DNA from: Penicillus capitatus
Lineage: Eukaryota; Plantae; Chlorophyta
Direction: 5' to 3'
Assembly: GCA_965649825.1 (NCBI GenBank)
Contig: OZ287702.1
Span: 796,786-860,785 of the forward strand
DNA length: 64,000 bases
Part shown: positions 2,074-47,406 of the stretch, piece by piece
How the letters are laid out: every line of letters begins with the position of its first letter
How positions within the stretch are numbered: the stretch's first letter is position 1
Notes under the pieces: model-generated
The model's input: only the letters and a program-made list of their open reading frames with translations
Told to the model about the DNA's origin: nothing
Database searches by the model: none
Translations under genes and position numbers: made by a program

Positions 2074-2079
2074 AGTATC

Positions 2080-5000
2080 ATGATAAACTTCAGACGGTCT
2101 GCAGTCGGTATCATTCTGCTTCTATATTGTCTGGCAGAAGCACAACAAGAGCTCGAAGGTGAAAGGAACAAACACACTCGTTCTTCGGAAACTTCTCGTA
2201 GACACGCAACATTACCTTTTGTCGCTCTTTCCGGCCCGGAAAGAGAGAGATTCGAGTTGCTAGAAACCGAACGTGTGCTTGGACACGCGTTTTAACCTTG
2301 AGGCTTTCTTCACAGGAGAGGGATGCGCTTTGAAAGAGGAAGGCACCAACGCAAGTTTTAATGAAGAACGTGGGACATGGACCGTCGGCGACGAGTTTTT
2401 TGAAGACTACGACTTGCAAGACGTTGTCGACTGTGCGAGTGAGGGAGATGTGATACGCTTGAACGTTGTTGTGTTAAGCCAACACGCCCCTAACAATGAG
2501 CTCATCTACTTACACTTGTGTCGATCTCCAAGCGACAGGTCGTAGGTTCGCTACACCTTCCCATCCACAAATAGACCCGCGGCTCTACGTCACAGATTCC
2601 AAGTAGATTCCGGAATCTTCGCAGAATATTCCTTCTTTGTTACTTAAAATAAAGTACCCTATAAAAGCTTTGTGAATGTACAGATCTTGTCTTTCGTTTG
2701 TAAGACTTTACGTTTCACAGGTCTACGTGCGCCCACCTTTAAAATTGTTTCCATCTAAAAACCTACGCAACAACGTCTCCAAAACCATTCGTCCACGAAG
2801 ACGCATTGAGATCGTGAAACGTCTCGAAATACGCGGAGTCTATGAAGAGAGTCCCGCAGGCGCAAACGTTCCGAAACCAGCGCTGACGTGCCCTTTGGGC
2901 AACTCGCTCCTCTTTATCCAGTCAGTTACAATAGACACCTCAGTGTAGTTCTGAATTGCGTCTGCAGGAATGCGAGTACCATTTTGCAGAACGTTGTCGT
3001 TCGAGATTGCGAGTTCGCGGAGCAGTTCGCGAATCTTAACATCGTCGATGTCACCTGCAATCAATCCCGCGAGGGTCCCATCGTACTCGAAATGATCGGC
3101 GTTGAATTCATCAACAATCGCAATCTACGTGGGAGAGTTGGATTTCATGTTCATAATGCTTCCTGCGTCTCGGTCACTCTTCGCAACTTCACATTCCGAC
3201 AAAATGAATATCTACTTGGTTCTGTTTTCGGAAAGCAGAATGACCTCGAGAGCGTACTCATTTCTGATAACATCCAGTGGCTCCAAATGACCATCAGAGG
3301 CGAATTCACCGCATTCTTCAATACAGAAATGCAGCGGAATGAATTTTTGGGCAGAGCAAACGATAACGATCAACCGTACAATCATTTTCGTTCCCTATGG
3401 ATTAGATTTAACAAGAGTTGTGGCTGCAGGTTTGAGGACATGGCACATCCAACAGACGTCTCTGCTTTAAAGAATGCCGTCTTTCGCTTTCCGGAGACGT
3501 CAACATCAAGACTGAAGGATATCGTTTCGATGAACAACACCGGCTGCGTGATGTCTATTGAGAGAGGAACGCTGACAGTGATTGGGATTCACAGTTTATT
3601 AACAACACTGGCGGGATCGGCTCCGTTATCATCGCCTTTCGAAGCAATGTCTCTCTGACCGATGCTGTATTCGAGATCAACGCGTACAATAACCCAGGAG
3701 GATGCTGGACTTGGCAGATGGAAGAGATAGCTTGATCCGCAACGTGCATTTTCGGAGGAATTTCGCCATAGCAGGCTCTTGTATTCTTGCGACGGATCCG
3801 AAGAGTCTGGGCATCTGGAACTCCACTCTGGAGCTGAACTACAATGACTATGGAGGGGCGGTTTCCGTAGACAGATCCTTCGATTCGAATTCGAGCTTGA
3901 CGATTTCCGATTGTCGGTTTTTGACAAACAATGTGACTGGGTCTGGACACCGTGCCAGGGGCAGCGTCGTCATCCAGCGTTTTAATGGCGGGAATATCAC
4001 AATACAATCGACGACCTTTGGACGACAGGTTGAAGAAAGGTGTTCGCTTCACTCTGACAATCTTTTCGGAATGTTCATTAATGATGATCGTATCGGAATG
4101 GTAGTGCTGACGGACACTCTGAACATTGCACTGGCTGTCAGAAATTGTTCGTTTGTCAAGGGACTCGGTATTTTGGGCAGCGGGATCCGTTTGGTAGACG
4201 TCAGTGGCAACTTCTCTATCGCACAATCTCTGTTTCATGAGATCAGAACTTGCACCTATGCGAGTGCCATATTCTTGAGATCTGCCAGTGCATACGGTAC
4301 TGTTCCCACGATGCTGACTATTACAGACTGTGCAGTTTCTTCAAATCGTTTCCGCGGCCAGACGATCTACATAAGTGGAAGCAGAGTAAACGCAGAACTG
4401 GGAGGAATACGATTTGAGGACAATGTTATCAATACCCGGTGGTGGATTGGAGGTTCCGTATTATTTGCAGGTGGCGTCGACAGTCTCTCTATGATAAACT
4501 GCACGTTGCAGAACAACAGCGCTCTGATTGATCGTAGTACTATGGAAGAGATGGGATCAGTGCACATAGAACGCACCCGAAGAATCAGGATAGAGCGAAG
4601 CAATTTCAACGCCAATTCGGTGGGTTCGAGAAGAGGGAATGCTGGAGGTGCCATCTATTGTTCCGCTGACGGAGAAACCAGCAGTCTAGAAATACATGAA
4701 TGCGAATTTGAGAGGAATGTTGCTGCTGACGGTGGAGCTCTTTATCTCAGCGGCTTCCACCATCTTCGTTTGACAAACTGTACCTTTCGAGAAAACAGAG
4801 CCGCTGATTATGGAGGAGCAATCCGTATTCTTGCACCAACCTCTGGGTATGACGACATCATTAGAGTAAACTTCACCGGAAACAAAGCTGCCGTCGGGGG
4901 GGCCTTGTGTATCAGCGGTCAACAGACACCATCACTGCAAGAGTCCTTTTTCTCAGAAAATGAAGCAACGTTGTATGGAGGTGCCATTGCACTGATAGCG

Positions 5001-7920
5001 CTCCATCGACCAGGATCCTTTGCATACAATGGATCCATCATCTACGACGGGACTGGCGCACGCTCCCAGACTCAACTACCATACATGACTCCATACGGCG
5101 AAACCATAGGTCGTTCCAGCACATTTATAGCAAATAGAGCATCGTTCGGAGGTAGCACCGACTAATATGTTTGCATAGTACTAAAAGTGAGGTCATTGTC
5201 TCCAGGAGCTCTTTTCTTCTATGGCGCTCGCGTCATTGTCGATGTGGACATCAACCCAACCCAAGTCTTTAATGCGTCCAGTCACTGTCTCTACTGTCGA
5301 TTTCGAGACAGACTAAACTGTACCAGGAATCATGCAAGCATTGCTGGAGGTGCCATTTTTGCAAGAGAGATACGAGACGCAAAGCACTTCATGGAACGCT
5401 GCAGAAATGTTGGAGAAGAACCACTCGAGGAGAACACTGTCACCACCTCGTACGCTGAGAATCCGGTGTGCCTGGTGGACGCAGACAACACTGTCGGAGA
5501 AGGCGGATATGGTCCAGATGTTGCCACCACAGCAATCGGCTTCTTCGCCGCACTGATCTACGACAACGGAACTCGGGTGATACTAGAAGAAGGAGCTGAG
5601 TATGACTTTGGCGATTGGAAGAGCGGTGACGATTTTCCCACGATGCAGATTTCCCTCCATGACGACTATGGACAAGGTCCGGCAAGAAAGGGATCTTCAT
5701 CCGTAAATTTGCCTCACGCCGACCTGGGAAATGTGCACCTGCCTGACTATTCGGCTCCTGTCACAGCAGTTTTGAGATCTGCTGATGGTCTTCTTCCGAA
5801 CGACATCGTGGCCGATTTAGCATCAGGAGAGGCAAATCTCACAATCGGTTCGCCGATGGTGAAACCTGAAATCTACACAGCTACCCTGAGTGTACCGGAC
5901 TTGTCCACAGAAAGTATACGTTTTAGAGTCAGAATCCGTCCGTGCATCGTAAACGAAGTGCCTCGTGAGGACAACAGGGGTTGTAATGAATGCGATCCTG
6001 GACAATACAACTTTGATCCCAGAAAAGGAAGATGTGTCACATGTCCAGACGATGCAGACTGTTTGGGCAAGTATATTCTCCCAGAGTCCGAACACTGGAA
6101 TGCATTTCCATGCTCGCACCACGTTCAAAAGTGCATTTCTACAGAAGCCTGTCTTGGCCGAAACTCAGAAGCTCTAAACACCACCTCATTGGAAGACAAG
6201 GCGACAGGATGCGAACTGTCCGAAAAAGATGTTAGAGATTATCAGTTGGCTTTGTGCAAAGAAGGATATGAAGGCTCCCTGTGCGGGTCGTGCGCAAGGG
6301 ATCATGGTAGGTTCGGCACATTTAGGTGCCTGCCATGTCAGCATCCTATCAGTGCGATTGCGACTGTTATTGCCGCCCTCTTCTTCATGACGATTCTTTC
6401 GCTGATTCAGATAAGAGGGACATTGACCCTTGCAGATCTACAGTCGTCGAGGAGAAACTTTTCGAGATTAATCAAACGCTGGAAAAGACTCTCTGTCCAC
6501 CACAATACGAATACCAATCAGAGAGTCACGGACACGCCTCAACAAGAAGCAGGACCCTCAGATCCAACTGCGCGACCTCGAGATTCGTCATCGGACTACC
6601 AAAGTAAAGCGCAAGAAGAGAACATAAAGTTCGTGCAAATCCTAAAGGTGACCTGTCATTTTCTTCAAGGATCTCTCTGCTGCATCAGTTATGTGCAGAT
6701 TGCCGTGAACTTTGTTCAAGTCGTGGCTGCTGGAATGGCACTGGACATAGCTTGGTCGTCGTCCGTACTCCGACTTTTCGAAGCTTGGGGTGCGTGACAT
6801 TTGCATCATTGATTTAATAAGAGTGACTCCTGCTTGCTACACAGATTGGATAGGCGGAGCCGTGAGCCTGTCCTTTGGATTTTCATTCGGCTGCTTATTG
6901 CCAAAAAATGCAGCAACGTCGACATCTGTTGTGCTGGCGATTATGACGCTCTCCATGCCTCCGTTCGTCGCCTCTTTCATTTGTTTAGTCTGGACAAGCT
7001 ATGCAGTGATGAAAGGCAGGCCAGGGGTATACCTGATCCGAAGAATCGTTCTTGTGTGTGTCTCTGTCTTCTACGTCTCCTATCTTCCTCTCGTCCGCAC
7101 GGCCATCAGCGTGTTTTCCTGCGTGGATGTCTTTTACGCTGTCACTCTTGAAGGAGTTGATGCATCGCATTCTTACTGGGCCGTGGACATGTCCATCAGG
7201 TGTTTCGTCAGCAGCCACAAGGTTCTTGCAATCGGCGTCGCCCTCCCGGTTCTCATGCTCTCTCTCCTCTTTCCTGTCCTCATGGCTACGATTCTCATCA
7301 TCGCCAGCAAGAAGGATTCACTTCGTTCTCCCTGGATTCGAGAAACATTCGGCATACATTTTGCCGCTTTAAAAGAACTCTTCATATTCTGGGAATGCAT
7401 TGTCTTGTTAAGGAAGTTTCTAATAGCTGTTGTAGCTGCCTTTTCGTACGATTTAGAAGCCAATCTACAGGGAATGTTTCTTCTTGCTATTCTACTGCTT
7501 GCACTTTTTCTGCACGTTTCGGCATCACCATTCAGGTCAAACATGAACACCCTCAATCTCCTTGAATCCGCGTCTCTCATTATTAGTGCGTCTACTATAC
7601 TGTGTGGTCTCATTCTGAATGACAAGAAGATTTCGCATGATATTTTGTCATCCAGTTTGACGGCAGCCATTCTGTTTCTGAATATCGGTTTCTCCTTGGT
7701 GCTTGCTTACTTTCTGGCAAAACACAAAATCAATGAAATGCATTTCGTTCTTTTGTCGAATGGAGAAGAACTGCCGTCGAACAATATATTCAGCGTGATT
7801 AAGAACTTTCTCGTCCATCGTTTCGAACAACTCAAAAATGCACTCACACAGAAACCCCGCGACATACAACATTCTGGTTTGGTACCGAGAGTCGAGTTGA
7901 CACCGGATCTTCCAAACTAG
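2080..7920 (+). pseudogene. Large cell-surface receptor/adhesin-like gene: signal peptide, pectin-lyase-like beta-helix with Pmp-like GGA(I/L/V) and FxxN repeats, Cys-rich GCC2/GCC3-like region, multi-TM C-terminus; probably disrupted
   Basis: N-terminus MINFRRSAVGIILLLYCLAEAQQ; repeats such as FERNVAADGGAL, FRENRAADYGGAI, FTGNKAAVGGAL; CNECDPGQYNFDPRKGRCVTCPDDADC and CKEGYEGSLCGSC; many hydrophobic helices in 6350-7720. Solo LTR at 2467-2772 and apparent 1-nt frameshifts near 3585 and 3705. Confidence 0.8.
2467..2772. mobile_element. Solo LTR (306 bp) inserted in a coding exon
   Basis: Termini TGTTG...CAACA; 4-bp target-site duplication ACGT at 2463-2466 and 2773-2776; internal AATAAA and TATAAAAG near 2648-2668. 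Removing the element and one TSD copy restores DVIRLNVSKTIRPRRRIEI. Confidence 0.85.
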
Positions 7921-9415
7921 TAGGCCCTTTTGTGATCGATTGTTGATCTTGTTGATCGCATTTCATCTGACTACATTTTAGTACACCTCGACATGTTTAA
8001 CCATTCTATCGGTACCTTTATTTAAGAATCCATCGCATTTCATCTTCTTGCTCAGACATGAGTCAATGATGACGTTTCCAAAACTCACAGTTGATGAAAT
8101 CGATTAGCCTGCTATGAGCAACCTTTATTGCCCAAGTCCCAGAGAGAATTCAAAATATCAGCCGCTGAGAAACGATTACGAAAACTGATTGCAATGATAT
8201 GTGTCGGATTTGATGCGATCGGTGTGTAAAGCGAACAGTCCTATCATTTAATCCTCATTGCTAAAGATACAGTGGAACAAATGTCTTGTTTCTTGTTGTA
8301 ACGAAGTTTGTGTACGGGCGCGCGTATGATAATTGATAGTGCAGTATTCTACTAGGTTAGGTAAGCCTACGGCTCATTCGCGGCCCCAATTCATCGGCAG
8401 ATCAATACGCAAGCTTCACTGGACGGTAACGCGAGATGATTCGCCGTCATATAGCACTCTTCTAAAGCTACCTTGTTTATAGTCTGCTCAGAGCTTCCAT
8501 ACAGTTTACCAGGTGAGGAAAACATGAAGAATCTGATGGTTTTACGGACGCGCCAACGGAAGATGATCGAGAGGACCAGAGGACTGGCACGCCATTCCAA
8601 GGAACCATTTGCGAGATTGTACCGAGCGGTTCAGCCGAGCAGGTGACGCAAAAGAGTAACTAAGGACGATGCGGTAGACCTAGATATGCCACTGGCCGAA
8701 ACAGGCGTGGCTCTCAGAGCCTCTTGGACACCGCCGTCGAGGGGCGACGATGTCTCTCAAGCAGCTTTCCTGTAAACAAAGACGTTCGTGGCTCTTGCTC
8801 CTATCTCTGCCATTCCGCATTGTGTTGCGGCGTCTTTCTATCTCTGAAGACGCACGAATGGTGCCGAGCAGTGCCGTCGTAAGGAATGCAAAGAGTCATC
8901 TATGCGCCCTACGGCGCTATGTCAAGACATTCTTACACCCCTCATCTGGTGTTAGAAGCTAGACAACTGGACCAAAGATCTACACGTGCAGGTAGTTAGT
9001 TGTCAGTCATCAAATGTGTTCTTGTGGCTTCAGTCACATTCCTTTTCCCGAGTTCGACAAAGGCGACTGACTGGCTTGCAGACTTACGTCTTCCACATCA
9101 ATTTTGCTTCAAGAAGTTTTGCGGGATACGTGTCATCGTCAATCGATGTCGTTCGGGCGCCGGAAAGAGGAAGAATACAAACGGGTTGCTTTCTAGTTCC
9201 AAAAGATAAGGTTGTGCGAAACAGACGCGCAAGACCAGCTTCTGGTGTTCTGTATTGAGTTTTCAATGCTCACACCAACAAAAGTGCATAGTACAGAACA
9301 TCTGGCCGATTTGACGGCAGCAGTCGTATAACGGCCATGTGCGTGATGAGACATACGTGCGCACATCTTGAATTCGTCGTATAAAATCGACTGTTAGTGT
9401 AGTGATCTGGACGGA

Positions 9416-11656
9416 ATGGCGAAGGGTTGCCGTGCTTTCACAGAATGCTCCAGGAAATACGGTAGTCCACTTTACGACTTCTTTATTCCGTCTCTGTTCG
9501 AGTTTTCCACGGGGAAGTCAGTAGTCATCAAAGATTGGCGCCTTGTAACTTGTGCTGACCGTTGCGCACTATTGAGCGTATGTTCTTAGGGTGTCTTTTT
9601 GCGAATCCTACAAGTCGCCATTCTTATCTACGTGCTAGTCGATGTCGTCAGCAAAGCATCTTACATGCGCCAAGAAGTACCCATGGCTGGCTGTCTCTGC
9701 CGTCACTTAACCGTCGAGCATAGGTCCCGAAGGGAGTCGTCAGTCCAGTGGTGCAAGTGAGGGCCGATGAACGAAGACAAATGTTTCTAGATCAGCGTAT
9801 TGTAAGACTGGCCTTTTGCCTGTCATGTCATCAATGACTTTGTTGTGTTGTCTGGTACAGCAATACAACAACGATAGCCTGCCTTACTGCGCCAACCCGG
9901 AAAACTACACCTACACTTTCGGAAACGATAGCTTTACAGGCTTCCAGTAGAGAATAACAGTAAGAAAGGATACAAGAGTGATTGCATGTGTTCAGGTGTT
10001 TGGTGATGGATGTCTTGGCAAATCCTCAAAAGGGAGAGACGAAGTTCTTCATCACCACCTACATGCGCATCGACAAGCTCTACTACGTCGACGTGCCAAA
10101 GCGCCAGGATTGTCCAAATCCGACAGAGATCCCCGCTATCGAGCTGACTGCCACTGCACTCGGCAACACCCCTTTCTTTGGCGTCTGCGTCTTCAGCAGT
10201 GTCGATCAGTACTTCACGATCGATCCAGAAGCAATTCCAATCGTAACGGGCCTTACTCTACATGGACTTGTAAAACTTCTGTTCTGTGCTCATAGACATT
10301 CATACACTCCTACTACACATCCGTCGTAGACAAGAGCGGATCTGTTCCTCAGACCGTCATCAAAGCGGAAAACTACGACGGAGGAGAGCTCTGGGCTCGA
10401 GACGGAGATCCTATACGCCTCAACACAAGGGAGCTATTGAAGATCAGTGGTGTGGATTTAGACAAACGACTGGATGAACAGCCTAACGGCCAGGGACTGG
10501 ATGCCGCAGCCAGAGACAACAAAACAGTCTCCTATCCTTATGCCCGTCTCTCTGGAGTCACTCTGATCATGACGTTTAAGTACTACACCCGCGCACTGGC
10601 TCCTGGGCGCTTCAAATGGACAGCGGGAGGGAAAGCAGGAGACACCATCTGCATTGTCGAAGTCACTCCTCAGCTCACGTGGTCATCTCAGGGATCAGAC
10701 ATTCAGCAGTTGATCAACTATACAGACGGTCCATTCTTCATCAATCCAAGACGTGAGCGTCGTGCAGCGAACGAAACAGAATCTCTTCTGGAAGGAATCC
10801 AAGTGGATTACCAGAGAAATGGCATTGAGCTCAAAATCAAGATTACAGGTCAGACTGCTTGCCATCGCCAGTATTACACGAAATGTTTTTAGGGAATATG
10901 GGACGATTTGAATTCTTCTCCCTTGTCACTGCAGTGATAACCGGCGCTGTATTGCTGAGCTTTGCACAGATTGCCGTCTCTTATGTTGCAATTTATGGGT
11001 TGGGCGTAGCGTCTACGCTATATGCCGAACATATAGAGGAGTCTGTCAACTGGAGAATGGACTATGCCCGATTTGCAGTCCAGTCTCTCGTTGCTGGAAT
11101 GGCGTTCAGGAAATACGACGAAGACGGATCGGGAACTCTGGATCGCCAAGAAATCTACAAGCACTTGAATGACGTCTTCCAAGGCGAAAGAGAGAATGGT
11201 CAGATTTTGAGTCTGGACGAGGTGGCATGCCTGTCCGACTTCTTTCTACGTCACAGACAGTTGACAGACGGCGAGGGCGAGCTCGAAGAACAATCAGAAG
11301 GCGTAAGATCACCCTGTCCTGTATCTCATTATCGCATCTCTGTGTCACAGTCGTCTGGTAACGTGGAGATTACGACAGTCAATATGGCTGACTGGATCGA
11401 TACCTTTACAGAAGAGAAGGTGCAGATCAGTTCTTTGACGCGTTTGGTCAAGAGTGAATACAACGATCCGAAGACCATCGAAATCCTTCGCGCCCTCGCT
11501 CAGGTACATCGTGTCAAAATTGTGGGAGAACTGTGATATGTGAACCTGAAGGGACGGGCGCTTCGCACTGGACCTCGCGTAATGATTGATTCCAAATCTG
11601 AATCTCAGACGGCAAATGCATGTGTCCGAGAACCGCTGCTAGAACATAATACCTGA
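9416..11656 (+). CDS. P2X: P2X receptor-like cation channel with C-terminal EF-hand, copy 1 (spliced)
   Basis: N-terminal F-S-T-G-K (YxTxK/R-like) then VIKDWRLG; TM1 GVFLRILQVAILIYVLV; pre-TM2 RNGIELKIKITG-NMGRFEFF and TM2 SLVTAVITGAVLLSFAQIAVSYV; EF loop DEDGSGTLDRQE at 11117-11152. GT-AG introns give a continuous frame; last exon ends ...EPLLEHNT*. Confidence 0.85.
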
Positions 11657-12554
11657 GCCCTGAACCTGAGCTAACACGTTGCATTCGGTCAGCGGGAAAG
11701 ATTACACCAACAGAAATCTACCTTTTTATTTCATGTGAATGTCATTCTGTCCGTTGTGTGTTCGTGCTGTCAATTCCAGATGTGCGGAATTGCCATCACT
11801 TCGCAGCGTTGAAGACTTTTTTGCAGTTTGGGAGAACAATGCACTCAACCTTGTTTGGCAGCTTGAGATCAGAAAAGCATCTCTTTTTCGACATAGACGA
11901 CCATGTGCATCGCAGTAAAATGCAGTGATGCCTTAGAGACAGAGCCCTCAGCCTGTATGAAAGACAAAGGATCGTTTTTGTAGACCTTGCCTATTTGTTC
12001 CATTTTCAACTCCGTTTGTCCTGAAGACGATCCCTTCTTTGCTAATCGTCGTTTTCACAGTCTCGGACTAAAGAGGATAGACCCATTCATAGACTGTACA
12101 TGTTGTTTTCCCTTTCTTTTGCAAGTTCAATTATGAATGTTGTTGAGTCACAGAATGGTTTGAAACATTGGTTCTTGATTTGTCGGTTGCGCCGACAAAA
12201 CGGCAATCGACATCAAACAAATTGTAACTGCGAACAAAATGGGTGCATTGCTTGATTTCACACCTATCGTATCTTATCTGAGTGTGACTAAAGATCGATC
12301 GTCATGCACTAGATAGAACTCTAGCGTCTTCAATTGAAATACGGACAAGGTTCTTCACCTGAAGGACGACCGGCATATCTGAAGCAAGTTATTTGCCAAA
12401 GGCGGCGGTCTTCTGTAACAAATGAATGACACATCAGTAGTGGATAGTGCGGCCCAAACTGTCCCATACATTTATCGATCCGGGAGTCAGTCAAGACTTT
12501 GACAAAAGGTGTCGATCGTCACCACCGCTCTTCTCCAATCATCGGGATTAGCTC

Positions 12555-14262
12555 ATGTTGCGATCTCGCTTCCTTCAAATTCTCCAAACGCTTTCAGGCG
12601 CGCGGAGCTCTTTGGCTTTCTGTTCGACTCTTGCCGAGGCCGCAGCGGCCACCAGGGCCGAGCGCTCCGTCCCAACGATTTTTGACAAGTGATTCTTTCG
12701 ATCGTCTTCCCTGTTCCAAACGCACGTCGTGTGTAACAGATCTTTGAAAGCGCGCCATAAGGAGCGAAGCGCTTTTGCCCTTTCTAATGGCACAGAAGAG
12801 TCTCCGTTCATTCAAGGAGTGATCTCACACTTGTTGGGTCGACTCGAAGACACAACTAGGACATTTAAACGTGTTCTGCTCCTCGGAAACTACCGTAAAT
12901 TTTCTTCCACCTTTCGGTCACGATCATTCATCCCTGTTATGTCTCATATAGCACATCACTCTCTCGAAATGTTACCACGATATAAGGTCGGGATAGAGGA
13001 GGTACTCTTCGTCAATCCGAGTCAGACTGAGCGGCGGACAGCAGAGGTGTGGCCAATGACCAGCAACTGCGGTTTCAACTAACAGATTGCAAGGATCTCA
13101 CTTCAGCTGGCATCACCGTGCAGACATTGGAGGGCGATGATGAAGGACTGCCTCTGATCCCTGGATCCGTCGATCGTAAGTAAGGGAATCGTTTTCATCT
13201 ACCTACCCTTCTGTCATGATTTCTCGATCACTCGTCTGGGAACGATGATCCAATTTGATGATCGTTTTTTGTGGATAGTGGTGATCAGCATTTTGTCGAT
13301 GCACTGGATCAATGACTTGGAAGTGAGTCCCGATAAAAATAAATCCATACGTTGTCTCTCTTCCATCAGCAACCTAAAGGTCCCCACTGCAGTTTGAGTT
13401 CGCTCGTTTGGCTTCTCAAATTGACAGCATGAACCGAGAAGAATGGACGGTTGGACATCTTTGTGCCATTCAGCAAAGGCGCAAAGCTACATTCCGTTGC
13501 ACATCGTCTGTCTTTAACGCTTTGTGACAGGGATCGCTGCTGCAGTGTCGTCTGGCTCTGAAGCCGGATGGCCTGTTCTTGGGAACCATGCTGGGAGGCA
13601 CAACGCTCCAGGAACTCCGCACCTGCCTTGCTTTGGCAGAACAAGAACGCAAAGGCGGCGTCTCGCCCAGAATGTCACCCCTCGTGCAAGTCATCCATCC
13701 ATTCTCCTTCGCCCGTAGGACACTTGAGATGGCCTTTTTGAGTAGGTGAGTGATGCCGGGCAGCTGCTGACGGATGCTGGATTGAAGCTCACTTCAGTAG
13801 ATGTGGACAATGTGATCATGAAGTACAGAAATGCATGGGATCTCATTCAGCACCTAAGAGCAAGATCTGCATTCTCTCTATGCGATGCCCATTCCACAGC
13901 ACCAGGTGATGGGAGAGAGCAACGCCTGCGTCCAAAGACAACCTATGCTCCATCTCGATACTGCTATGGCGGTAAGCATCACGTACTTCATGCGCAGCTT
14001 AGAGAAATCCAATGCGACCTGCAGATGAGCGCTTTGTATGATGCAAAGTACAGTGACGAAGATGGATGGATTCGAGCGAGCTTTCAGGTGTGTTATGCAC
14101 ATGAGTGTCGTTTCGGAGAGATAGATGGCGATGCAGGTTGTCTACATGATAGGCTGGTCTCCAGATCCAGGCCAGCAGAAACCTGCGCAACGAGGATCCG
14201 CACAGGTATCGCTAGAAGACTTGGATGATTTCGCCGCAGAATGGAAAGAGATAGAAACTTAG
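12555..14262 (+). CDS. NDUFAF5: Mitochondrial complex I assembly factor NDUFAF5-like SAM-dependent methyltransferase/hydroxylase
   Basis: Presequence [11 protein letters not shown]...; [88 protein letters not shown]. Confidence 0.92.
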
Positions 14263-14408
14263 TAATGATAAAGGCATCTCTGATGCTCACATGCCAATCA
14301 ACAAAAACCTACACTGTGAGTAGAGGTGTACAGGAATAGACAGATGAGCATTGGGTTAAGGGAGGTGTCCCTCAGAGAACCGTTTAAGTGTAATCAGTGT
14401 TCGGCTGT

Positions 14409-16161
14409 CTAAACAAGACGAAGCATGTTCAAAACTGCATCCTCCACTCGGCGCCGCAGCAGTTCCGATTTGAGTTTCTGGTTGATTTCTGACCCGAAGG
14501 AATAGACCAATGCACGACGTGCCGATTCCAAGTCAATGCCTCGTGCCCTACAAATCAGCCGTCTCTGATCCTTTCCCAAAGGCCACGCAAGTGTTTCTAC
14601 CTGAAGTAGAATACCTCATCGTCTGAAAGATCGGACACGGTGCAGCCATGCGTGCACTTCACATCGTCCGCCACAATCTGAAGGTTGGGCTTCACGTTCA
14701 CCGTTGCCTTGGGTGCCAGAAGCAAATTGCGGCTCAACTGTCCCGCATCTGTTTTCTGTGCGCGACGATTCACCTAAGAGAGATTCTCGCTCACGGTCTG
14801 CCTGATCAAGAATTCTTCACCTGGACGTTGCCATCGAATACTCCGGAGCCTGAGGACGACGTGACAATACACTTGTGCAGCTGGTTGACGGTGCCCGAAG
14901 AGTGATCCAGAGTGACTTTTGAATGCAAGTCATGCAGCTGTGTATCGCCTGACAGATGAAAGTGATACATCTCAGTCTCTGTTTCATCTCCACTCTACAG
15001 CCTGTCACATCAAAGACGGAACCTTCATGGACCAGCCAACCTGTTCGATGTCAAGATCGTGTCTGGAGAGCTGTCCGCCGATGGTCGATTCCACTAGATG
15101 ATAATTCGATTTGGTCGATTGACGGACGAGGGTGGTTTTCATGTGATAGCCAGATGGACCATCGAGCTGCACGTAATGATGGAAGAGCTCTGCGTTTTCG
15201 TCAAGTTCGATCTCACAGACGGGAAGAGAGAGGTGTGCACCCGAAGTACCATCCAGCATCACGAACTCTTCTACGACCTCCAGACGACTGCCGTTCCGAC
15301 ACTTGATGAAAAGACGAGGAGCTGATACATGAAAATCTTCGCCATCCCCTAACGAGATCACAGACATCCAGCGTCTCTCAGCACAAGAGTGAGACCTGAC
15401 GAGAGATAGACAATGTGTAGAGGCTGTGCGATCTGGGTATCTCTGGGAATGTCGAGACAGAGGGCGTCCGTAAACAGTGCACCATTCAGCTTCGCAAATG
15501 GACCTCCTCTCGCCGACGACTGAGCACCCTGTAGAAAACCAGTCCTTCTTCTTTGTCAGTCGAGATCGATTTCGCCTGACCAGGAGGTCCAATGAAGTGG
15601 TCCTTTGGTTTGTGTCCTGGATGCATTTCTTCAAATCGTCGTCCAGTGTGGTGACCTTCCACTGAAGGACGCCGTTGAGAATGATAACTCGGTTTCTGCT
15701 GTCTTCCTCCAACAACAGTCCATCAATGGCACTGTCCTCCACAGCCACTGTTGTATTCGCTTTCTTGACGGGGGCTTTGAGAATTGGCGATATATCAGTG
15801 AAACGAAAGGTCTCTTCTTGAGTTGTTGGCATTCGAAGTGTGCTCAATTCCTGCAGGCTTTTTTCTCTGATATCGCCGAAGACATTACTACAGGACGCGT
15901 TTTTTCTCCCGTCGTCTAAGAATGCAACAGGGAGCACTCACCTTTCTGCAGAAAGGCAGTTTTTGAGGAGACGCGAAATGAAGCGATCTTCGACCTCTTC
16001 TGCACGTATTCCATTCCCGGTTGCCTTCCTTCGCACCGCTCGACGCCCATCGACCCCACCACGAATCTCCGCTACACCACAACCTCGATCATGTAGGAGC
16101 ACGCCAAACGCGTGTCTGAAGACTTACGACGTGCGATTCGGTTTGGAATGGAAGCCATCAT
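14409..16161 (-). CDS. SUFD: Plastid Fe-S cluster assembly protein SufD
   Basis: Transit-peptide-like start; LRMPTTQEETFRFTD, APRLFI, LEVVEEF, QIVADDVKCTHGCTVSDL, FYFRARGID. Confidence 0.92.
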
Positions 16162-16426
16162 GCGCAATGCTTTCGTTGGCAATCACATACAACACACTGC
16201 CCACTCTCCTGTCCAATGTATTCGCATTCTTCAAAGCGATGCCGGAACAAGTTAAAAACGTTGTCTTCTGTGCCAGCCAATCAAACAGGCGATTCTAGTA
16301 GTCTGCAGATCTTGTTAACGAGCAGGATGTATCAAACATGTCTTGTCCCAGCAGCGTGATGGGACGTCAAGCCGCGCGCATGATAAAACAGTCCAACCGG
16401 CCTGGCAGGACATTATCGACGCGGCG

Positions 16427-18725
16427 ATGGTTGACCTCACCTGTTTTGCGAAGATAGGCGAGGATGCCCTTAATCGTTTCTTCGGAAGGGTGCAGTTTCT
16501 CTTCAACTTTGCCACTGAGAAGTTTGTCGTTATCAAAGACTGGCGCCTCGTAACTTGTGCCGACCGTGGCGCACTATCGAGTGAATGTTCTTAGGGCCTC
16601 ATTTTGAGACTGCTACAAGTTGCTATTATCATCTACGTGCTAGTCGATGTCGTCAGCAAAGCATCTTACATGCTTCAAGAGGTCCCCATGACAGGCCGTC
16701 TCTGCCGTCATTTAACCGTCGAGGCATAGGTGCCAAAGGGAGTCGTCAGTCCAGTGGTGCAAGTGAGGGCCGATGAACGAAGACAAATGTTTCAAGATCA
16801 GCGTGCTGTAAGACTAGTCTTTTTGCCTGTCCTGTCGTCAATGACTTTGTTGTGTTGTCTGGTACAGCAATACAACAACGATAGCCTGCCTTACTGCGCC
16901 AACCCGGAAAACTACACCTACATTTTCGGAGACGATAACTTTACAGGCTTCCAGTAGAGAATAACAGTAAGAAAGGACACAAGAGTGATTGCATGTGTTT
17001 AGATGTTTGGTGATGGATGTCTTGGCAAATCCTCAGAAGGGAGAGACGAAGTTCTTCATCACCACCTACATGCGCATCGACAAGCTCTACTACGTCGACG
17101 TGCCAAAGCGCCAGGATTGTCCAGATGCGGAAGAGATCCCCGCTATCGAGCCGAATGCCACTGCACTCAGCAACACCCCTTTCTTTGGTGTCTGCGTCTT
17201 CAGCAGCGTCGATCAGTACTTCACGATCGATCCAGAAGCAATTCCAATCGTAATGGGCCTTACACTGCAGGGACATGTAAAACTTCTGTTCTGTCCCTCT
17301 AGACATTCATACACTCCTACTACACATCCGTCGTAGACAAGAGCGGCTCTGTTCCGCAGACCGTCGTCAAAGCGGAAAACTACGACGGAGGAGAGCTCTG
17401 GGCTCGAGACGGAGATCCTATACGCCTCAACACAAGGGATTTATTGAAGATCAGTGGAGTGGATTTGGACAAACGACTCAATGAACAGCCTAACGGCCAG
17501 GGACTGGACACCGCGGCTAGAGACGATGAAGAAGACTTCTATCCTTATGCCCGCCTCTCTGGAGTCACTTTGATCATGACGTTCAAGTACTACACCCGCG
17601 CACTGGCTCCTGGGCGCTTCAAATGGACAGCGGGAGAGAAAGCAGGAGACACCATCTGCGTTGTCGAAGTCACTCCTCAGCTCACGTGGTCATCTCAGGG
17701 ATCAGACATTCAGCAGTCGATCAATTATACAGACGACCCATTCTTCATCAACCCAGAACGTGAGCGTCGTCCCTCGAACGAAACAGAATCTCTTCTGGAA
17801 GGAATCCAAGTGGATTACCGGAGAAACGGCATTGAGCTCAGATTCCAAGTCTCAGGTCAGACATCCTATTCCGTCAGACTTAAGTGAAACTGTGTTGCAG
17901 GAAACATGGGACACTTTGACTTCTTCTCCCTTGTCAATGCACTGGTGGCAGGTGCTGTGCTGTTGGGAGTGGCTCAGTTGATCGTAACATATGTCGCGAT
18001 GTATGCACTGGGTCTGTCTTCTGAACTCTACTTGGAATACATGAGAGAGTCTGTCAACTGGAGAAAGGAATACGCACGCTTTGCTGCTCAGTCTCTGGTT
18101 GCCGGTTCGACCTTCATGAAGTACGATAGTAATGAGTCGGATGCTCTGGATCGGAGGGAGATCTATAAATACCTAATGGAGATCTTTAGCGGAGACAAGG
18201 AAGAGGCTAAGATTCTGGACCGTCAGCAAGTCGCATGTCTTACAGATTTCTTGATGCGACACGGAGAAATGAAAACAAATGTATCAAGAGGAAGATTGGA
18301 AGATGTGGGTATACATCTTCTGCTACCACACGCTTACTTTTGCTGTTGTAGGTGTCAGATGTGCAGATCAGCACCATCAATATGGCAGAATGGGTGGACA
18401 TCTTCACAGAAGAGAAAGTGCAGATCAAGTCTCTGGCGCGTCTGGTGAACAGCGAGTACAAGGATGAAAAGGTCAAAGACGTCCTTCTCGCTCTCGCAGA
18501 GGTATCGCAAATCGAAGATTCGGTCATTTTGTTCGAGCTGTGGACATGAAGGGACGGGGTCTGCGTTCTCTCACGGGAATTGGAAGCGATGAATTTGCAA
18601 GATTGCAACGCGAAGACACCCAAGCGGCTGAACAACAACTCCTTAACACTGAGGAAGGGGTAAGCGCCGGCTCCGAAGCCCCGATCATTCCGAAAGAAGG
18701 GGTAAATGTAATTTTTTATAAATGA
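16427..18725 (+). CDS. P2X: P2X receptor-like cation channel with C-terminal EF-hand-like loop, copy 2 (spliced; 3' end may extend to about 19025)
   Basis: FNFATEKFVVIKDWRL; ectodomain nearly identical to copy 1; YRRNGIELRFQVSG-NMGHFDFF; TM2 SLVNALVAGAVLLGVAQLIVTYV; loop DSNESDALDRRE at 18125-18160. Confidence 0.85.
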
Positions 18726-19152: not shown

Positions 19153-20490
19153 TCAGTCTGACAATTCCGATGCGTTCTCCGACTCCTCTTTATCAAGTTC
19201 CAATGTAGACTCGACCTCTTGCTCCACTGCCTCTTCCTCCTCCTCTTCATCCATTGGTAGACCGGTGTCTTGGAGGACTTCATCTGAATACGATACCTGG
19301 CAGACAGACACGGATGTGTTTCTAGAAAAGAATAGAGCGCTGTGGGAACGCACCTTGACCATGGCAGGCCGCAGGAGTCTTCCTCTGATCGTAAAGCCTT
19401 TCCTTAGCTCCTGCAACACGGTTCCGTCTGGTAAGTCATTATTCAGCTCCCTCAGCATCGCATCGTGAAACTCGGGATCGAACGGTTTCTGATCGCAGTC
19501 GATCACTTCTACGCCCAACTGACTGAAGAGATCGACCATCTGTCGATAGAGTCCCTAACCCGCAACGTTGCGGCCTCAGCAAAAGAAGACTGACACAAAA
19601 AGAGACCGAACCATGAAATTTGTCACAATAGCTTCCTCGCTCTCGTTCTGTGGCTTGATCTGCGTTCGGGCCAGTTCAAAATTGTCAATCATTGGCAGAA
19701 GCGCCTCGATCACATCGCCCTTTGCCACATTCCTTAACTGTTCTCTTTCGCTCTCCTGCATCGATCGATGATTTGATGCTAGCAATGGAATGCGCAGATA
19801 GTGAACATACAGCTCTCTTTCTGAAGTTATCAAAATCGGCATTGAGACGAAGATATTTAGATTTGAGTTCTTCCATCTCTGCCTCTGTCATCGTACAGCG
19901 TTCCTCTGCATCACTCTTGGCACTCAGTAGCTCATGGAACCCCTGTTGCACCTCGCCAATCATCTCCTCCTAAACACAACCATTTCTCGGTCACTCTCAC
20001 ATAAGACCCGTCCACTCAAATGACCGTTGCCGCATCGGACTCTTTCATTTTCTGAAGAATCTCGGCACACGGACCGCTATACTCGTCGCCGTCACCGGAT
20101 ATCTCTTCTTCTTCTTTGCTGCTTCGCCAAGTGCATGCTGAATAAGACACTCGCAAGGTGGAAGGCGCTCACCTCTCCGTTTCTTCTTCTGTTTGTTTCT
20201 CTTCATCCACGACTGTCTGATTTTCGGGATCCTGTACAGCAGACCCCATGATCCCTTTCCTTCGTGCACTCAATACTTACTGCAGATCTGAGGAGGATCG
20301 GTGTTCTGCGCGTTACAGTGCCGAGAATGGGGAACCGTCCAGTCCGGCAGACAGTAATGGGACCCGTGTTTCGGCCACCGCGCAGAAGCGTGCCCTTCGC
20401 AGCCCGTGGGCAGTCCATTCCCATCACATGTCTTCGTAAAGTCTGTCGCGTTAGAAGATCAGTCGAACCCAACACACGTGACACGCGCAT
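19153..20490 (-). CDS. GRPE: Organellar (likely plastid) GrpE nucleotide-exchange factor
   Basis: KYLRLNADFDNFRKR, IEALLPMIDNFELA, FDPEFHDAM, VLQELRKGFTIRGRLLRPAMVKV; Arg/Ser-rich transit peptide from ATG 20490. Confidence 0.93.
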
Positions 20491-43889: not shown

Positions 43890-46800
43890 TTATGCCTGAT
43901 GCATAGAAGCTCTCAGGGTGGAAGAAAAGTCATGAAAAGTTTTCTGCTGTTTGGGAGTCATCTTGGCAACAGCTGTCGTCAAAATCTCATTGCCCATGGA
44001 GTGACTAAACGACTGCAGAATGTTCCAAATGCGGGTAGCTGTCTCCGGCATCGTCATCGTCTTCCCTGCAGCCAAGATGCGCACCAGCACCTTCAAAACA
44101 CACACATCAACACACTCTCACTCTTTTGCTGATAATGAGTGACCTCCACAATGTGAACAAGATTCTTGTTGTTGCCACCGAGAACCCGGACATCCTGCTG
44201 TTCGACCATCGTTACCAGCAGTGCATGCATGTTTCTGGCCTCTAGGTCATCGTGGAGCAAAGGTAAGTTCTTGAGCCAGACTTGGTCCACCACTTCCGGA
44301 TCCACCTTGTCCGGAAACTGCTGGATGATCTTGCCAATCGTCGAGACGATGTTATCCGTGGCCATTTCGTTTTCGCGACTCTTGGCAGAAGGGTGCTGAA
44401 CAGCACGGATCAGATTTGGAAGCAGTTCAGGGATGTGTGGCTGAAAAGCTTCCGGATACTTCGACGCCACAACACCCAATCCATACACACTGCATTGCCG
44501 CAGACTCGCATCTTCATTCGATGCGCCTTCGATCAAGAAAGGCAAAAATTCGTGCAAGTAATTGTTTCCAGCCTGTGGGCAGTGCTCCAAAATATCGTCC
44601 ACGACACAAATGGCGATTCGGCGTTCCACAGCCGAGCGGCCTTTGCCCAAAAGTGCATGAACAAATGGCATTGAACCGACGATGTAGGTAATCACGGCAT
44701 CGCCGTACCTCTTCATGAAAGAGGAGAGAACGGTGGCCACTTCGTCCAGCACATCTGTCTCCATCTCTTCCTCATCATCATGATTCGTCGGGGGAACATT
44801 CTCATACTCCTCAAAATCGTCCTCTTCATCGGACAGGAGACCTTCAATGCGTTGCTTTCGACGATCTTCGCTCTCGGAGAAGACCATACGCAATGTGTCG
44901 AAACACTGGGAGACCATTGTTTCGGAGAGCAGTTCTGGTGTTAGGATGTCCACCATGGCAGCAATAGCACGCAATGCAGACTCTATCACTTCAAGTTCGT
45001 CTTCGTTTTTGAGGGCGTCGATGGCGGCTGGCCAGATGAATTCGACCATCTGTTTCACAAAATCCAGCGTGACACCAGCGCCGTTTTTCATTCCGGTCAG
45101 TGCGGCATCGAGAAGCTCTGGAAGACACTGAAATGCTCCGCTCCGAACTTCATCACTGAAAATGAATTTCAGCATAGGGACAACCACATCTGTGATCTCT
45201 TTGACGTACGGCAGGAAGCCATCTTTCAACACGCCGGCATAACTGGCAACCATTTCGCAGGCAGTGGCTTTCTCCTCCATGGCACTGCTGCGCAATCGCA
45301 CGAGCTTGCCACCCACATGGAAAGTCTCGGAGTCGTCGTCATCGCTGTTGTCATTTAGAGGATCTGTGATCTTGATCTCTGGATCGGCTTTGATGTGATT
45401 CAGCACAAGCGGCATGACGATTTCGAGGTAGGGGAGGAATTCACGTCCCAGACTGCGACACATTCTGGCTCCTGCCTGAATCATGTAACCAGGCAACGGA
45501 TCAGAAGGATCAAAGTGCGCCTGATGCAGTTGATGAATGAGTTGCATGACTTCACTGGCATCTTGACGGAAACGATCTGCGCCGACGGCCATCCCCACCA
45601 GCGAAATGCACTCCAATGCCTTCGCCCTCAAGTATCGATGTTTAGGATCGGTCGCCTGAGCAAACATGGTCCGAAGCAGCGGCATCACCGCATCGTAGTA
45701 GGCGCCAAAATGCTCATTTGCGCTGTCTGCCACACTGGCCAGTGCCGTGAGTGCAGATTCCGCCACCAGACGCGAGGGAGAGTGCAGGAGTTGTATGAAA
45801 GTGGGCACCAGAGCATCCAGATAGGGCAGAATGTCATCCTCCTCGCATTCATCGCAGAAATTGACAATCGCTGCTGCTGCATGTGCCTGAACGCGTGGAT
45901 GCTGAGCATCTTCCATCACCGATTTCAGTTTTGGGATGATCTTCTCGTGCTGCGAGCCTTGGATATCTGGAGAGAGATCGGTGCACATCTGCCCAATGGC
46001 TTGACAGGCAGCCCATCGCACTTTGGGCATCGTATCGCTCAATCCATTCATGCACATATCTGTCAGCGCATCGATTTCTTGCAGCATGACTTTGTCACAT
46101 CCTTCTGCAATTTGTGACAGACAGATGAAAGACGCCTGCCTTTTCTGCCAAGAGGGATCATTGATGCAGCCACTCAGCATGGCGCCAGCGATCGGAACTA
46201 ACACTCTGCCACCGAACGACAGAGCCAGACGATCCAAGGACTCCATACCAAAATCAAACAGCTCGCCATTTCCTGCGTCTTCATCCTCATCTTCTGCTGT
46301 ATGCCATTTGGGCAGGTCTTCGATGTCGAGCAAGAAAACCATCAACGCCTCGAAGAGACACTCTGCGAAATTTGGCATGGCTCTGAAGAGATTTCCCAGC
46401 CCCTGGTCTTTCTGCTCGGCAATCGAGATCAAGACTTCTGCTGCCAAGATACGCATCGATTTGTCGATGGAATCCGAGAGCGTCACTTTCAGCAGGGATG
46501 GTAATATTTCCTTTAGAGATGGCTTCAGAAAACGCGGTGCCTCTTCGGCGACATCGATGAGACTCTCCATCACCGTCTCAGCCGCCGTCTCGTCTCTATT
46601 CTTCAAAAACTCAAGCAGCGCTTCGATCACTTTGGGCACCATGGGTCTCAGAGCATCCGCCACCTGACCTTTCTCGGATGCAATTCTGCACATCGCTGAG
46701 ATGGCTTCGGATTTGACAGGGACAGGTCCTGTGAGAATTGCCCGTTCGATAGCCGTCACTAACATCTGACCAGTGGCGTTGAAAATCTCAAAGTCTGTGT

Positions 46801-47311
46801 TCTCTGCCAGAGAACCAATGATGCGAAAAGCAGTGACCACTGCATGCGATTCAGAACCCTCCATCAACTGAAACAGGGCCTGATGCAATTCTGGCCATCG
46901 GCCTGTCGACAACAAGTAACGGGCGAGTTCGGAAACAGCATCGGCCGTTTTGAACAGCACATCTGCGATTTTTTCAGCACGGAGCGCATTTAAGAGCTCA
47001 CTCTTCACTTCATACTTCACCGGATCTGACAGAGCCGTCCACATCAACGGAGTCTCGATCGTCAAGCATTTGCGAAGGAGCATTGCCGAGAAGGCACGAA
47101 ATGCCACGACCTCTGAGTGACGCACCGTAGATATGAGATAACGCACAAACAAGTCTGGATGTTTCTTCAACTCGACTAACACCGCCTCGGCAAATTTCCG
47201 TCGAGTGTTGTCCGGGTTCATGAGCTCCCGTAAGAAATCTTCAAACTGCTGGGCATCGGGCGTCATCAACACCTGGACGATTTGTTGCACTTTGGCCGCC
47301 GACATCGCCAT
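43890..47311 (-). CDS. IPO5: Importin-5 / karyopherin beta-3 (HEAT repeats)
   Basis: ESLDRLALSFGG, WQKRQASFICLSQIAEGC, PRVQAHAAAAIVNF, LRAKALECISLVGMAVG, MEEKATAC, ATDNIVSTIGKI. Confidence 0.95.
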
Positions 47312-47406
47312 TCTCTTCGACGGTCTCAGAGCAGACGTACGTCGAAAATGCAACGGAGAGGGATAGATGATGAGGTCATCATGCATTTACTGGCGATAAC
47401 CGAGTG

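Follow-up and report, generated by a model that had tools for sequence, protein, structure and literature searches.

P2X receptors are textbook channels gated by adenosine triphosphate (ATP). Nearly all work on them concerns animals, and outside these there are single examples from Dictyostelium and Ostreococcus. The animal receptors have ten conserved cysteines in the ectodomain, P2X7 possesses a large cytoplasmic C-terminal domain, and the Dictyostelium receptors are short, with about 380 amino acids (aa). In green algae, the land-plant-type and the animal-type sets of channels differ strongly, and the only characterized P2X from this group is, to our knowledge, OtP2X of Ostreococcus tauri. 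This receptor keeps the equivalents of Lys69 and Lys308 (PMC3853471). The so-called Branch 1 P2XRs, among which are Dictyostelium and green-algal proteins, miss at least two of the canonical ATP-binding residues, and the Dictyostelium receptors yield ATP-evoked currents despite the missing residues (PMC10620158). Harding et al. described P2XR-related proteins of Halocafeteria in which the ATP residues are not conserved, the C-terminal tails are longer and a Tx[K/R] motif is kept (PMC5447177). As for Ca2+ sensing, animal P2X2 is reported to interact with VILIP1, an EF-hand sensor that is a protein of its own (PMC3360091), and the Ca2+-dependent gating of plant TPC1 needs its second EF-hand (PMC11085791). 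Here we analyze a stretch of 64,000 nucleotides from the siphonous green alga Penicillus capitatus (hereafter the window), which holds two intact genes for P2X-fold proteins, copy 1 and copy 2, both with a predicted EF-hand pair in the cytoplasmic tail.

Both genes are on the forward strand and are formed by nine exons. Copy 1 (9416..11656) encodes 611 aa in exons 9416-9544, 9590-9676, 9724-9801, 9861-9946, 9996-10269, 10335-10848, 10893-11302, 11351-11503 and 11552-11656, including the stop codon. Copy 2 (16427..18725) encodes 629 aa in exons 16427-16549, 16595-16681, 16730-16807, 16868-16953, 17003-17276, 17342-17855, 17901-18304, 18352-18501 and 18552-18725, again including the stop. The encoded proteins have masses of about 68-70 kDa. 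An earlier note on this DNA, made from the letters alone, had placed a pair of P2X-like channels with a cytoplasmic EF-hand at 9416-18725. This range begins with the first ATG of copy 1 (9416) and closes with the stop codon of copy 2 (18723-18725), and the motifs quoted there (TxK, first transmembrane helix or TM1, the strand that precedes the second one or TM2, and the EF loops) are all present in the translations.

Several methods assign the P2X topology and fold to these proteins. The Pfam model P2X_receptor (PF00864, cut-off 27) scores 32.3 bits with copy 1 and 40.5 bits with copy 2, the match being mainly to the N-terminus and TM1; spliced models are required for this, as the single-exon open reading frames (ORFs) of both genes gave no P2X match in Pfam. 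A family profile built from an alignment of 54 members (A2) matched human P2X4 chains in the PDB with E 1.4e-14 across TM1 and the block formed by the pre-TM2 strand and TM2, in which 'ryGIkfkfqasGkigkfdf...glVLlg' of the profile is aligned to 'AYGIRFDIIVFGKAGKFDI...GLALLG' of human P2X4. When the same profile was compared by hhalign with human P2X4, using a sequence that was verified only against the fragments in the profile-versus-PDB alignment, the probability was 98% and E was 2.6e-13 over 360 columns. The AlphaFold2 models have a mean predicted local distance difference test (pLDDT) of 85.2 and a predicted TM-score (pTM) of 0.70 for copy 1, and of 86.4 and 0.69 for copy 2, and in both models two transmembrane helices enclose a large, mostly beta ectodomain. 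The best 50 Foldseek matches of each model in the PDB are all chains of P2X1, P2X2, P2X3, P2X4 or P2X7, with 5svk_A as the top match (E 1.8e-12, probability 1.00, TM-score 0.55 normalized by the target). Confident models whose best structural matches are exclusively P2X chains bear out the fold that the earlier note had proposed.

The individual elements of the channel body can be located in both copies. For the N-terminal YxTxK/R motif, copy 1 has F-S-T-G-K and copy 2 has F-A-T-E-K, so that Tyr is replaced by Phe and T-x-K is retained (T32-G-K34 at 9509..9517 and T30-E-K32 at 16514..16522, forward strand); in copy 1 it lies inside the stretch aligned to the YxTxK region of P2X3 and P2X4. TM1 is an AlphaFold helix that spans intron 1 in both genes, at residues 41-64 of copy 1 (9536..9652, forward strand), where it is aligned to TM1 of P2X4, and at residues 39-62 of copy 2 (16541..16657, forward strand). 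The strand before TM2 reads NGIELKIKITGNMGRFEFF in copy 1 and NGIELRFQVSGNMGHFDFF in copy 2 and continues into TM2. In copy 1, the strand NGIELKIKITGNMGRF followed by TM2 FFSLVTAVITGAVLLSFAQIAVSYVAIY occupies 10818..10996 of the forward strand including intron 6, with TM2 at 10913-10996 (AlphaFold strand 369-395, helix 397-424), and in the comparison of the family profile with the PDB this strand is aligned with YGIRFDIIVFGKAGKFDII...GLALLG of human P2X4. TM2 of copy 2 is FFSLVNALVAGAVLLGVAQLIVTYVAMY (17921..18004, forward strand; AlphaFold helix 395-422). The ectodomain between both helices is divergent and has about 330 residues in each subunit. It contains five cysteines per copy, four of them invariant in the 54-sequence alignment (C108, C128, C166 and C191 of copy 1), and neither copy has the ten of the animal receptors. 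Both termini would be on the cytoplasmic side by homology. Altogether, we think that copies 1 and 2 are probably subunits of P2X-fold cation channels, which by homology would be trimeric and conduct ions.

The cytoplasmic tail appears to carry an EF-hand pair that starts about 40 residues past TM2 in each copy, with one ligand-complete site (EF1) that is predicted to bind Ca2+. The EF1 loop is DEDGSGTLDRQE in copy 1 (11117..11152, forward strand; residues 465-476), with all the Ca2+ ligand positions present, as the earlier note had read it, and DSNESDALDRRE in copy 2 (18125..18160, forward strand), with Asp for Gly at position 6 and the ligand positions retained. Both loops, taken together with the next residue (DEDGSGTLDRQE-I and DSNESDALDRRE-I), satisfy a PROSITE-style EF-loop pattern with ligands at positions 1, 3, 5 and 12 and hydrophobic residues at position 8 and after position 12; over all six reading frames of the 64 kb window this pattern has just two matches, both at these homologous EF1 sites. 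Positions 422-502 of profile A2, which comprise both EF-hands, match calmodulin, calcineurin B and calbindin with E from 1e-8 to 1e-11, and NOX5 is also among the EF-hand matches of the family profile. The second loop (EF2) is degenerate in both copies, with non-ligating residues at positions 1, 3 and 5. In copy 1 it is GNVEITTVNMAD (11357..11392, forward strand), in a region that the profile aligns with the second EF-hand of calmodulin and calcineurin B, and in copy 2 it is SDVQISTINMAE (18355..18390, forward strand), located by the profile match and the AlphaFold model.

The models give two helix-loop-helix units in this region, joined by a short beta bridge between their loops. In copy 1, TM2 is followed by a helix at 428-437 and by a long one at 443-464 that enters EF1; the loop at 465-476 contains a strand at 471-472, and the exiting helix is at 474-486. 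In EF2, a helix at 497-515 is separated by a low-confidence insertion from a strand at 536-537 and a helix at 538-545, after which there are two further helices. The tail of copy 2 has the same layout (helix 441-462, strand 469-470, helix 472-483), with a pLDDT of about 93 at the loop. As for the mature messenger RNA (mRNA), EF1 and TM2 are encoded by the same exon, number 7, and therefore EF1 could not be spliced away without losing the pore helix. Furthermore, the channel and the EF loop are found in one ORF in relatives known from transcriptomes (a Trinity assembly of Neomeris; MMETSP sequences of Tetraselmis and Pyramimonas), hence in those species both are on one mRNA. As a separate observation, intron 7 of copy 1 (11303-11350) has 48 nucleotides, is in frame and is free of stops, so that its retention would add 16 residues to the already long EF2 loop; the equivalent intron of copy 2 has 47 nucleotides and its retention would shift the frame.

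Several points weigh against reading these proteins as P2X-fold channels with a Ca2+-binding tail. The sequence identity to solved P2X chains is about 10%, and the TM-scores to them are moderate (0.33-0.34 when normalized by the query, about 0.55 when normalized by the target). Beyond the parts near the membrane, the hhalign alignment of the ectodomain to canonical P2X is of low confidence. The AlphaFold models are monomers, which cannot show trimer formation or contacts between tail and pore. On the side of the tail, the Pfam matches are under the cut-off, with 21.6 bits for EF-hand_6 in copy 1 (cut-off 25) and 11.8 bits for EF-hand in a copy 2 fragment, and only one of the two EF sites of each protein is predicted to be able to bind Ca2+ in the canonical manner. 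Finally, the gene models of both copies are open frames from genomic DNA of the source alga, joined by hand at GT..AG sites.

The last point brings up the possibility that at least one of the copies is a decaying duplicate or is wrongly modeled, in which case the architecture would be an artefact of the joined exons. The calls of prokaryote-style ORFs in databases, which recover only fragments (P0001, P0007, P0153), go in the same direction as the manual construction of the models. Nevertheless, all 16 introns of the two genes have GT..AG ends, similar lengths of 44-65 nucleotides and matching positions in both genes, with an uninterrupted frame, and the alignment of the spliced proteins with a gene model of Caulerpa (P0002) extends over their full length. 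The ratio of nonsynonymous to synonymous substitution rates (dN/dS) is 0.05-0.36 across every exon compared, the orthologues of both copies are intact in a related species (ENA ERZ26696514) over the exons examined, and both AlphaFold models have a pLDDT above 85. We consider that an artefact of this kind is very improbable.

The architecture is not restricted to this locus. A word-indexed homologue search found only two and then four relatives, and it was an exhaustive profile search that exposed the family. At E<=1e-3 this search gave 706 representative proteins, of which 191 reach E<=1e-10 and 49 reach E<=1e-30; many of the 706 have 500-650 aa and cover both channel and tail. The loops were surveyed in the best 150 of the 706 relatives plus copies 1 and 2 and the Caulerpa protein, aligned to the family model. 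TM2 is included in 128 of them and the loop columns are filled in 113, of which 84 keep the EF1 ligand positions 1/3/5/12 (D / DNS / DNSTEG / ED). An EF loop also stands at this alignment column in Caulerpa, in most family members and in a third paralogue of the source alga that is described below. The named green-algal members are from Caulerpa lentillifera (three genes), Bryopsis sp. KO-2023 (GMH40917.1, annotated as 'hypothetical'), Ostreobium quekettii, Neomeris dumetosa, [Myrmecia] bisecta, Tetraselmis sp. GSL018 and Pyramimonas parkeae, and other members come from unnamed environmental eukaryotes. Judging from this survey, the EF-hand tail is a family-wide and ancient feature. The combination of P2X and EF-hand seen in the earlier note is real, then, and what does not hold is that it would be peculiar to this pair, since relatives are found in other green algae.

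Automated annotation has partially recorded this combination. The Myrmecia and Tetraselmis proteins are labeled 'EF-hand domain-containing protein' in UniRef, and one Caulerpa paralogue (P0152), which exceeds the EF-hand cut-off with 27.7 bits, has precomputed matches to PF00864, PF13405 and PF13499, so the presence of both domains is visible to such pipelines. In most members one of the two domains, P2X or EF-hand, is below the threshold. With EF-hands under the cut-off and a P2X model that matches only the N-terminus, the architecture is mostly missed by the pipelines, which probably accounts for the lack of any discussion of it. In the searched literature we found no paper describing a P2X with an EF-hand and nothing relevant on P2X in Caulerpa or Bryopsis, in agreement with the earlier note, according to which the characterized animal, Dictyostelium and Ostreococcus receptors are not known for such a tail. 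Two members deserve a separate remark. P0152 (g8251.t1 of Caulerpa lentillifera) has 1133 aa, nearly twice the length of the others, with a second EF-hand region at about 854-887; either the gene model is a fusion or the tail of this protein may be far longer. P0098 has the strict EF pattern at the EF2 position (DDDDDGKLQYREW, residues 469-481) and none at EF1; perhaps both sites worked in the ancestral tail, and the lineages differ in which of them was lost.

An ATP-gated receptor had been assumed for this pair, and this part of the earlier proposal does not find backing in the alignments. In an alignment anchored by TM1 and the pre-TM2 strand, in which N293 and R295 are not reliably alignable, K67, K69 and K313 of human P2X4 are opposite V81, Q83 and Q378 of copy 1, with R at the last position in copy 2. 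Neither copy has the ATP-binding lysines of the P2X family, and family-wide these columns are occupied by W/Y/F, E/S/Q and Y, with Lys in only three sequences, at the last column. These residues give no support to canonical ATP binding; ATP might still gate the channels through a different site. We also considered the loss of the lysines as proof of ATP insensitivity, a conclusion that has to be softened because Dictyostelium-type receptors respond to ATP without several of the residues (PMC10620158).

The same fact lends some weight to the idea that copies 1 and 2 are ordinary ATP-gated P2X receptors with a non-canonical site, as in the Dictyostelium type, whose EF-hand tunes desensitization by Ca2+ feedback in a different way for each subunit. 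The P2X fold found by Foldseek fits such receptors, and so do the tails, which diverge more than the rest of the protein (56% identity between the copies for TM2 and tail versus 88% for the channel body). We think, however, that this is unlikely, as none of the three positions is Lys in the window proteins, the family-wide residues at them are of other types, and the characterized OtP2X does retain its Lys69 and Lys308 equivalents (PMC3853471). Moreover, the copy 2 loop has every ligand position, and differential tuning is not evident from it.

This matter of tuning had been linked in the earlier note to the lack of the conserved Gly6 in copy 2. The substitution itself is there: position 6 of EF1 is Gly in copy 1, Asp in copy 2 and Asn in the copy 2 orthologue of the related species, whose EF1 loops are DEDGSGTLDRKE (copy 1 orthologue) and DSNKSNALDRKE (copy 2 orthologue). 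Since the orthologue also lacks Gly6, the loss in copy 2 must be old and tolerated. The inference drawn from it holds less well, given that the copy 2 loop retains ligand positions 1, 3, 5, 9 and 12 and fits the EF pattern, and that Gly6 is found in 63 of the 84 ligand-canonical family loops and absent in the other 21 (25%), which have N, K, W, D or other residues. The PROSITE EF pattern also accepts D and N here. The missing Gly6 is weak evidence for a different tuning of the two subunits. That its loss means a dead EF-hand was also contemplated and rejected as unsupported, in view of the ligand positions kept, the Asn6 of the orthologue and the 21 of 84 family loops. Heterotrimers of the two subunits and a role in wound signaling are speculation.

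A Ca2+-dependent gating of these channels is, on the other hand, a plausible inference from the position of EF1. Cytosolic Ca2+, including that entering via the pore, would bind to EF1, and the Ca2+-bound EF1 would shift the conformation of the tail linked to TM2 and thus modulate gating. The transmission to TM2 might take place via the 443-464 helix (copy 1 numbering), the entering helix of EF1, and the activating ligand would act from the extracellular or luminal side. Trimer formation, ion conduction, Ca2+ binding at EF1 and its effect on gating are all presumed steps in this scheme. Extended to the relatives, it would imply a protist and green-algal clade of P2X-fold channels without a canonical ATP site, gated or strongly controlled from inside by a Ca2+-bound EF-hand pair on the pore helix. 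We put forward this wider proposal tentatively, as a possibility that falls short of being likely.

Alternatively, the EF-hand pair could be a structural or docking module that works independently of Ca2+, either as a cap or ballast that stabilizes the trimer or as a binding site for a partner. The degenerate EF2 of both copies suits this role, as does the fact that about a quarter of the family members have lost at least one EF1 ligand position. In addition, there are two more conserved helices past the pair, and exon 8, in which they are encoded, has a dN/dS of 0.05 to 0.19, so that constraint extends beyond the loop. A module of this type would not explain that the ligand positions are kept in 84 of 113 loops, with Gly6 in 63 of those 84, which is expected only if metal binding is selected, and both window loops fit the strict EF pattern. 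Thus, a purely structural function seems to us quite unlikely, and we retain a Ca2+-binding EF1 that would act on the pore as the preferred reading.

The comparison with the related species gives information on the history of the pair. Its gene order is the same as in the window: a gene with polymorphic-membrane-protein (PMP) repeats, the copy 1 orthologue, SufD on the reverse strand and the copy 2 orthologue. As both copies have syntenic orthologues, the duplication predates the split of the species, and copies 1 and 2 are, on this comparison, old tandem paralogues. The similarity between them is nevertheless very uneven. Exons 2-6 and introns 1-5 are 85-96% identical between the copies, versus 64-71% for exons 7-8 and 53-64% for introns 6-8, and the synonymous divergence (dS) is 0.19 in exon 6 versus 2.8 in exon 7. 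A blastn search of the window against itself pairs the tract 9490..11118 of copy 1 with 16495..18126 of copy 2, both on the forward strand, with 87.8% identity including the introns, and this high-identity tract stops at the first codon of the EF1 loop. Most likely, the ectodomain exons and introns have been homogenized by gene conversion from copy 2 into copy 1. The direction is suggested by exons 5 and 6 of copy 1 in the window, which are nearer to copy 2 of the relative (74% and 80% identity) than to its copy 1 (67% and about 71%). With respect to the related species, the dN/dS of exon 7, which encodes TM2 and EF1, is 0.165 for copy 1 and 0.112 for copy 2, and that of exon 8 is 0.054 and 0.194, respectively; these low values indicate that both tails are under purifying selection.

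A third paralogue (L001) is located at 9097-11351 of record 1239464-1260765 of ctg340592 (ERZ25074695), which is the source contig of the window in ENA (6.93 Mb), roughly 120-190 kb away. It has a copy-1-like N-terminus and tail, with the EF1 loop DDDGSGTLDRQE, and lies within a larger segmental duplication that reaches upstream of copy 1 (window 2077-12022 versus 5996-11720 of L001, 79-87% DNA identity). We examined whether this paralogue is a pseudogene and rejected this, since the TM1 exon, which looked broken in the frame taken by tblastn, reads through in a different one; the gene is apparently intact.

Two unrelated genes are found between copies 1 and 2, within the range claimed for the pair. 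One, at 14409-15937 (about 14.4-15.9 kb) on the reverse strand, matches the SufBD core in Pfam and is SufD-like, presumably with a role in plastid Fe-S assembly. The other, at about 12.5-14.3 kb on the forward strand, gave no match in Pfam and PDB searches, and its C-terminus may resemble NDUFAF5-type methyltransferases. Upstream of copy 1, a run of long ORFs at 2888-7920 (forward strand) contains Chlamydia polymorphic-membrane-protein repeats (Pfam PF02415, 36 bits), a domain that is unusual in green algae. This gene has a syntenic counterpart in the related species (L003-L005), and part of it is duplicated beside the third paralogue. Just downstream of copy 2 there is a GrpE exon at 19153-19539 (reverse strand). 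Further away, an importin-5-like protein is encoded by a single uninterrupted ORF of 1097 codons at 44093-47386 (reverse strand), without introns as opposed to the eight of each P2X-like gene 30 kb off, so that intron density seems to be very uneven in this genome. This importin-5 shares 55% identity with a EukProt protein whose name follows the style of the Caulerpa models, 47% with Bryopsis and 48% with Ostreobium, which suggests a bryopsidalean alga closer to Caulerpa. Finally, one ORF at 52114-53373 (reverse strand) joins a piece of a PCMT-type methyltransferase to a BTB/POZ domain.

The locus provides an entry to a large subfamily, for which hundreds of representative sequences exist, in which an intrinsic EF-hand pair is joined to the P2X scaffold and the canonical ATP lysines are missing. 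The scaffold and the sensor are each well known, and it is their clade-wide fusion, together with the loss of the lysines, that has not been discussed in the searched literature. If the EF-hand controls gating, these proteins would be the first P2X-fold channels with a built-in Ca2+ sensor and a testable candidate for Ca2+ signaling in green algae. If the clade is gated from inside, it would represent a class of Ca2+-activated or Ca2+-inactivated trimeric channels on a P2X scaffold, which could propagate or terminate Ca2+ waves in giant siphonous cells.

Compared with known systems, the nearest analogy for the design is given by TPC1 of plants and diatoms and by the non-channel proteins NOX5/RBOH, which also have a cytosolic EF-hand and a membrane domain on one polypeptide; their membrane folds are unrelated to that of the window proteins, and the analogy is one of design only. 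With the animal receptors P2X1-7 (5SVK for human P2X3, 9BQH for human P2X4, 6U9V for rat P2X7), the window proteins share the two-transmembrane topology, the TxK motif and the strand G-I-x-F...G-x-x-G-K/R-F that leads into a TM2 with G-x-x-L-L, with a Foldseek probability of 1.00 and E of about 1e-12. They differ from them in the identity of about 10%, in the absence of K67, K69 and K313 and in having four family-invariant cysteines instead of ten, and their C-terminal domain is an EF-hand pair, unlike the ballast of P2X7. The Branch 1 P2XRs and the Halocafeteria proteins are similar in their divergent ectodomain, in the partial or complete loss of the ATP residues and in their occurrence in green algae and protists, whereas no EF-hand is mentioned in either account (PMC10620158, PMC5447177). 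Lastly, OtP2X is also a green-algal protein of the P2X family and retains the N-terminal YXTXK/R motif (PMC3853471), but it is an ATP-gated channel of 42 kDa with the Lys69 and Lys308 equivalents and no reported EF-hand, in contrast to the window proteins of about 68-70 kDa, in which these lysines are absent and the pore helix is followed by an EF-hand pair.

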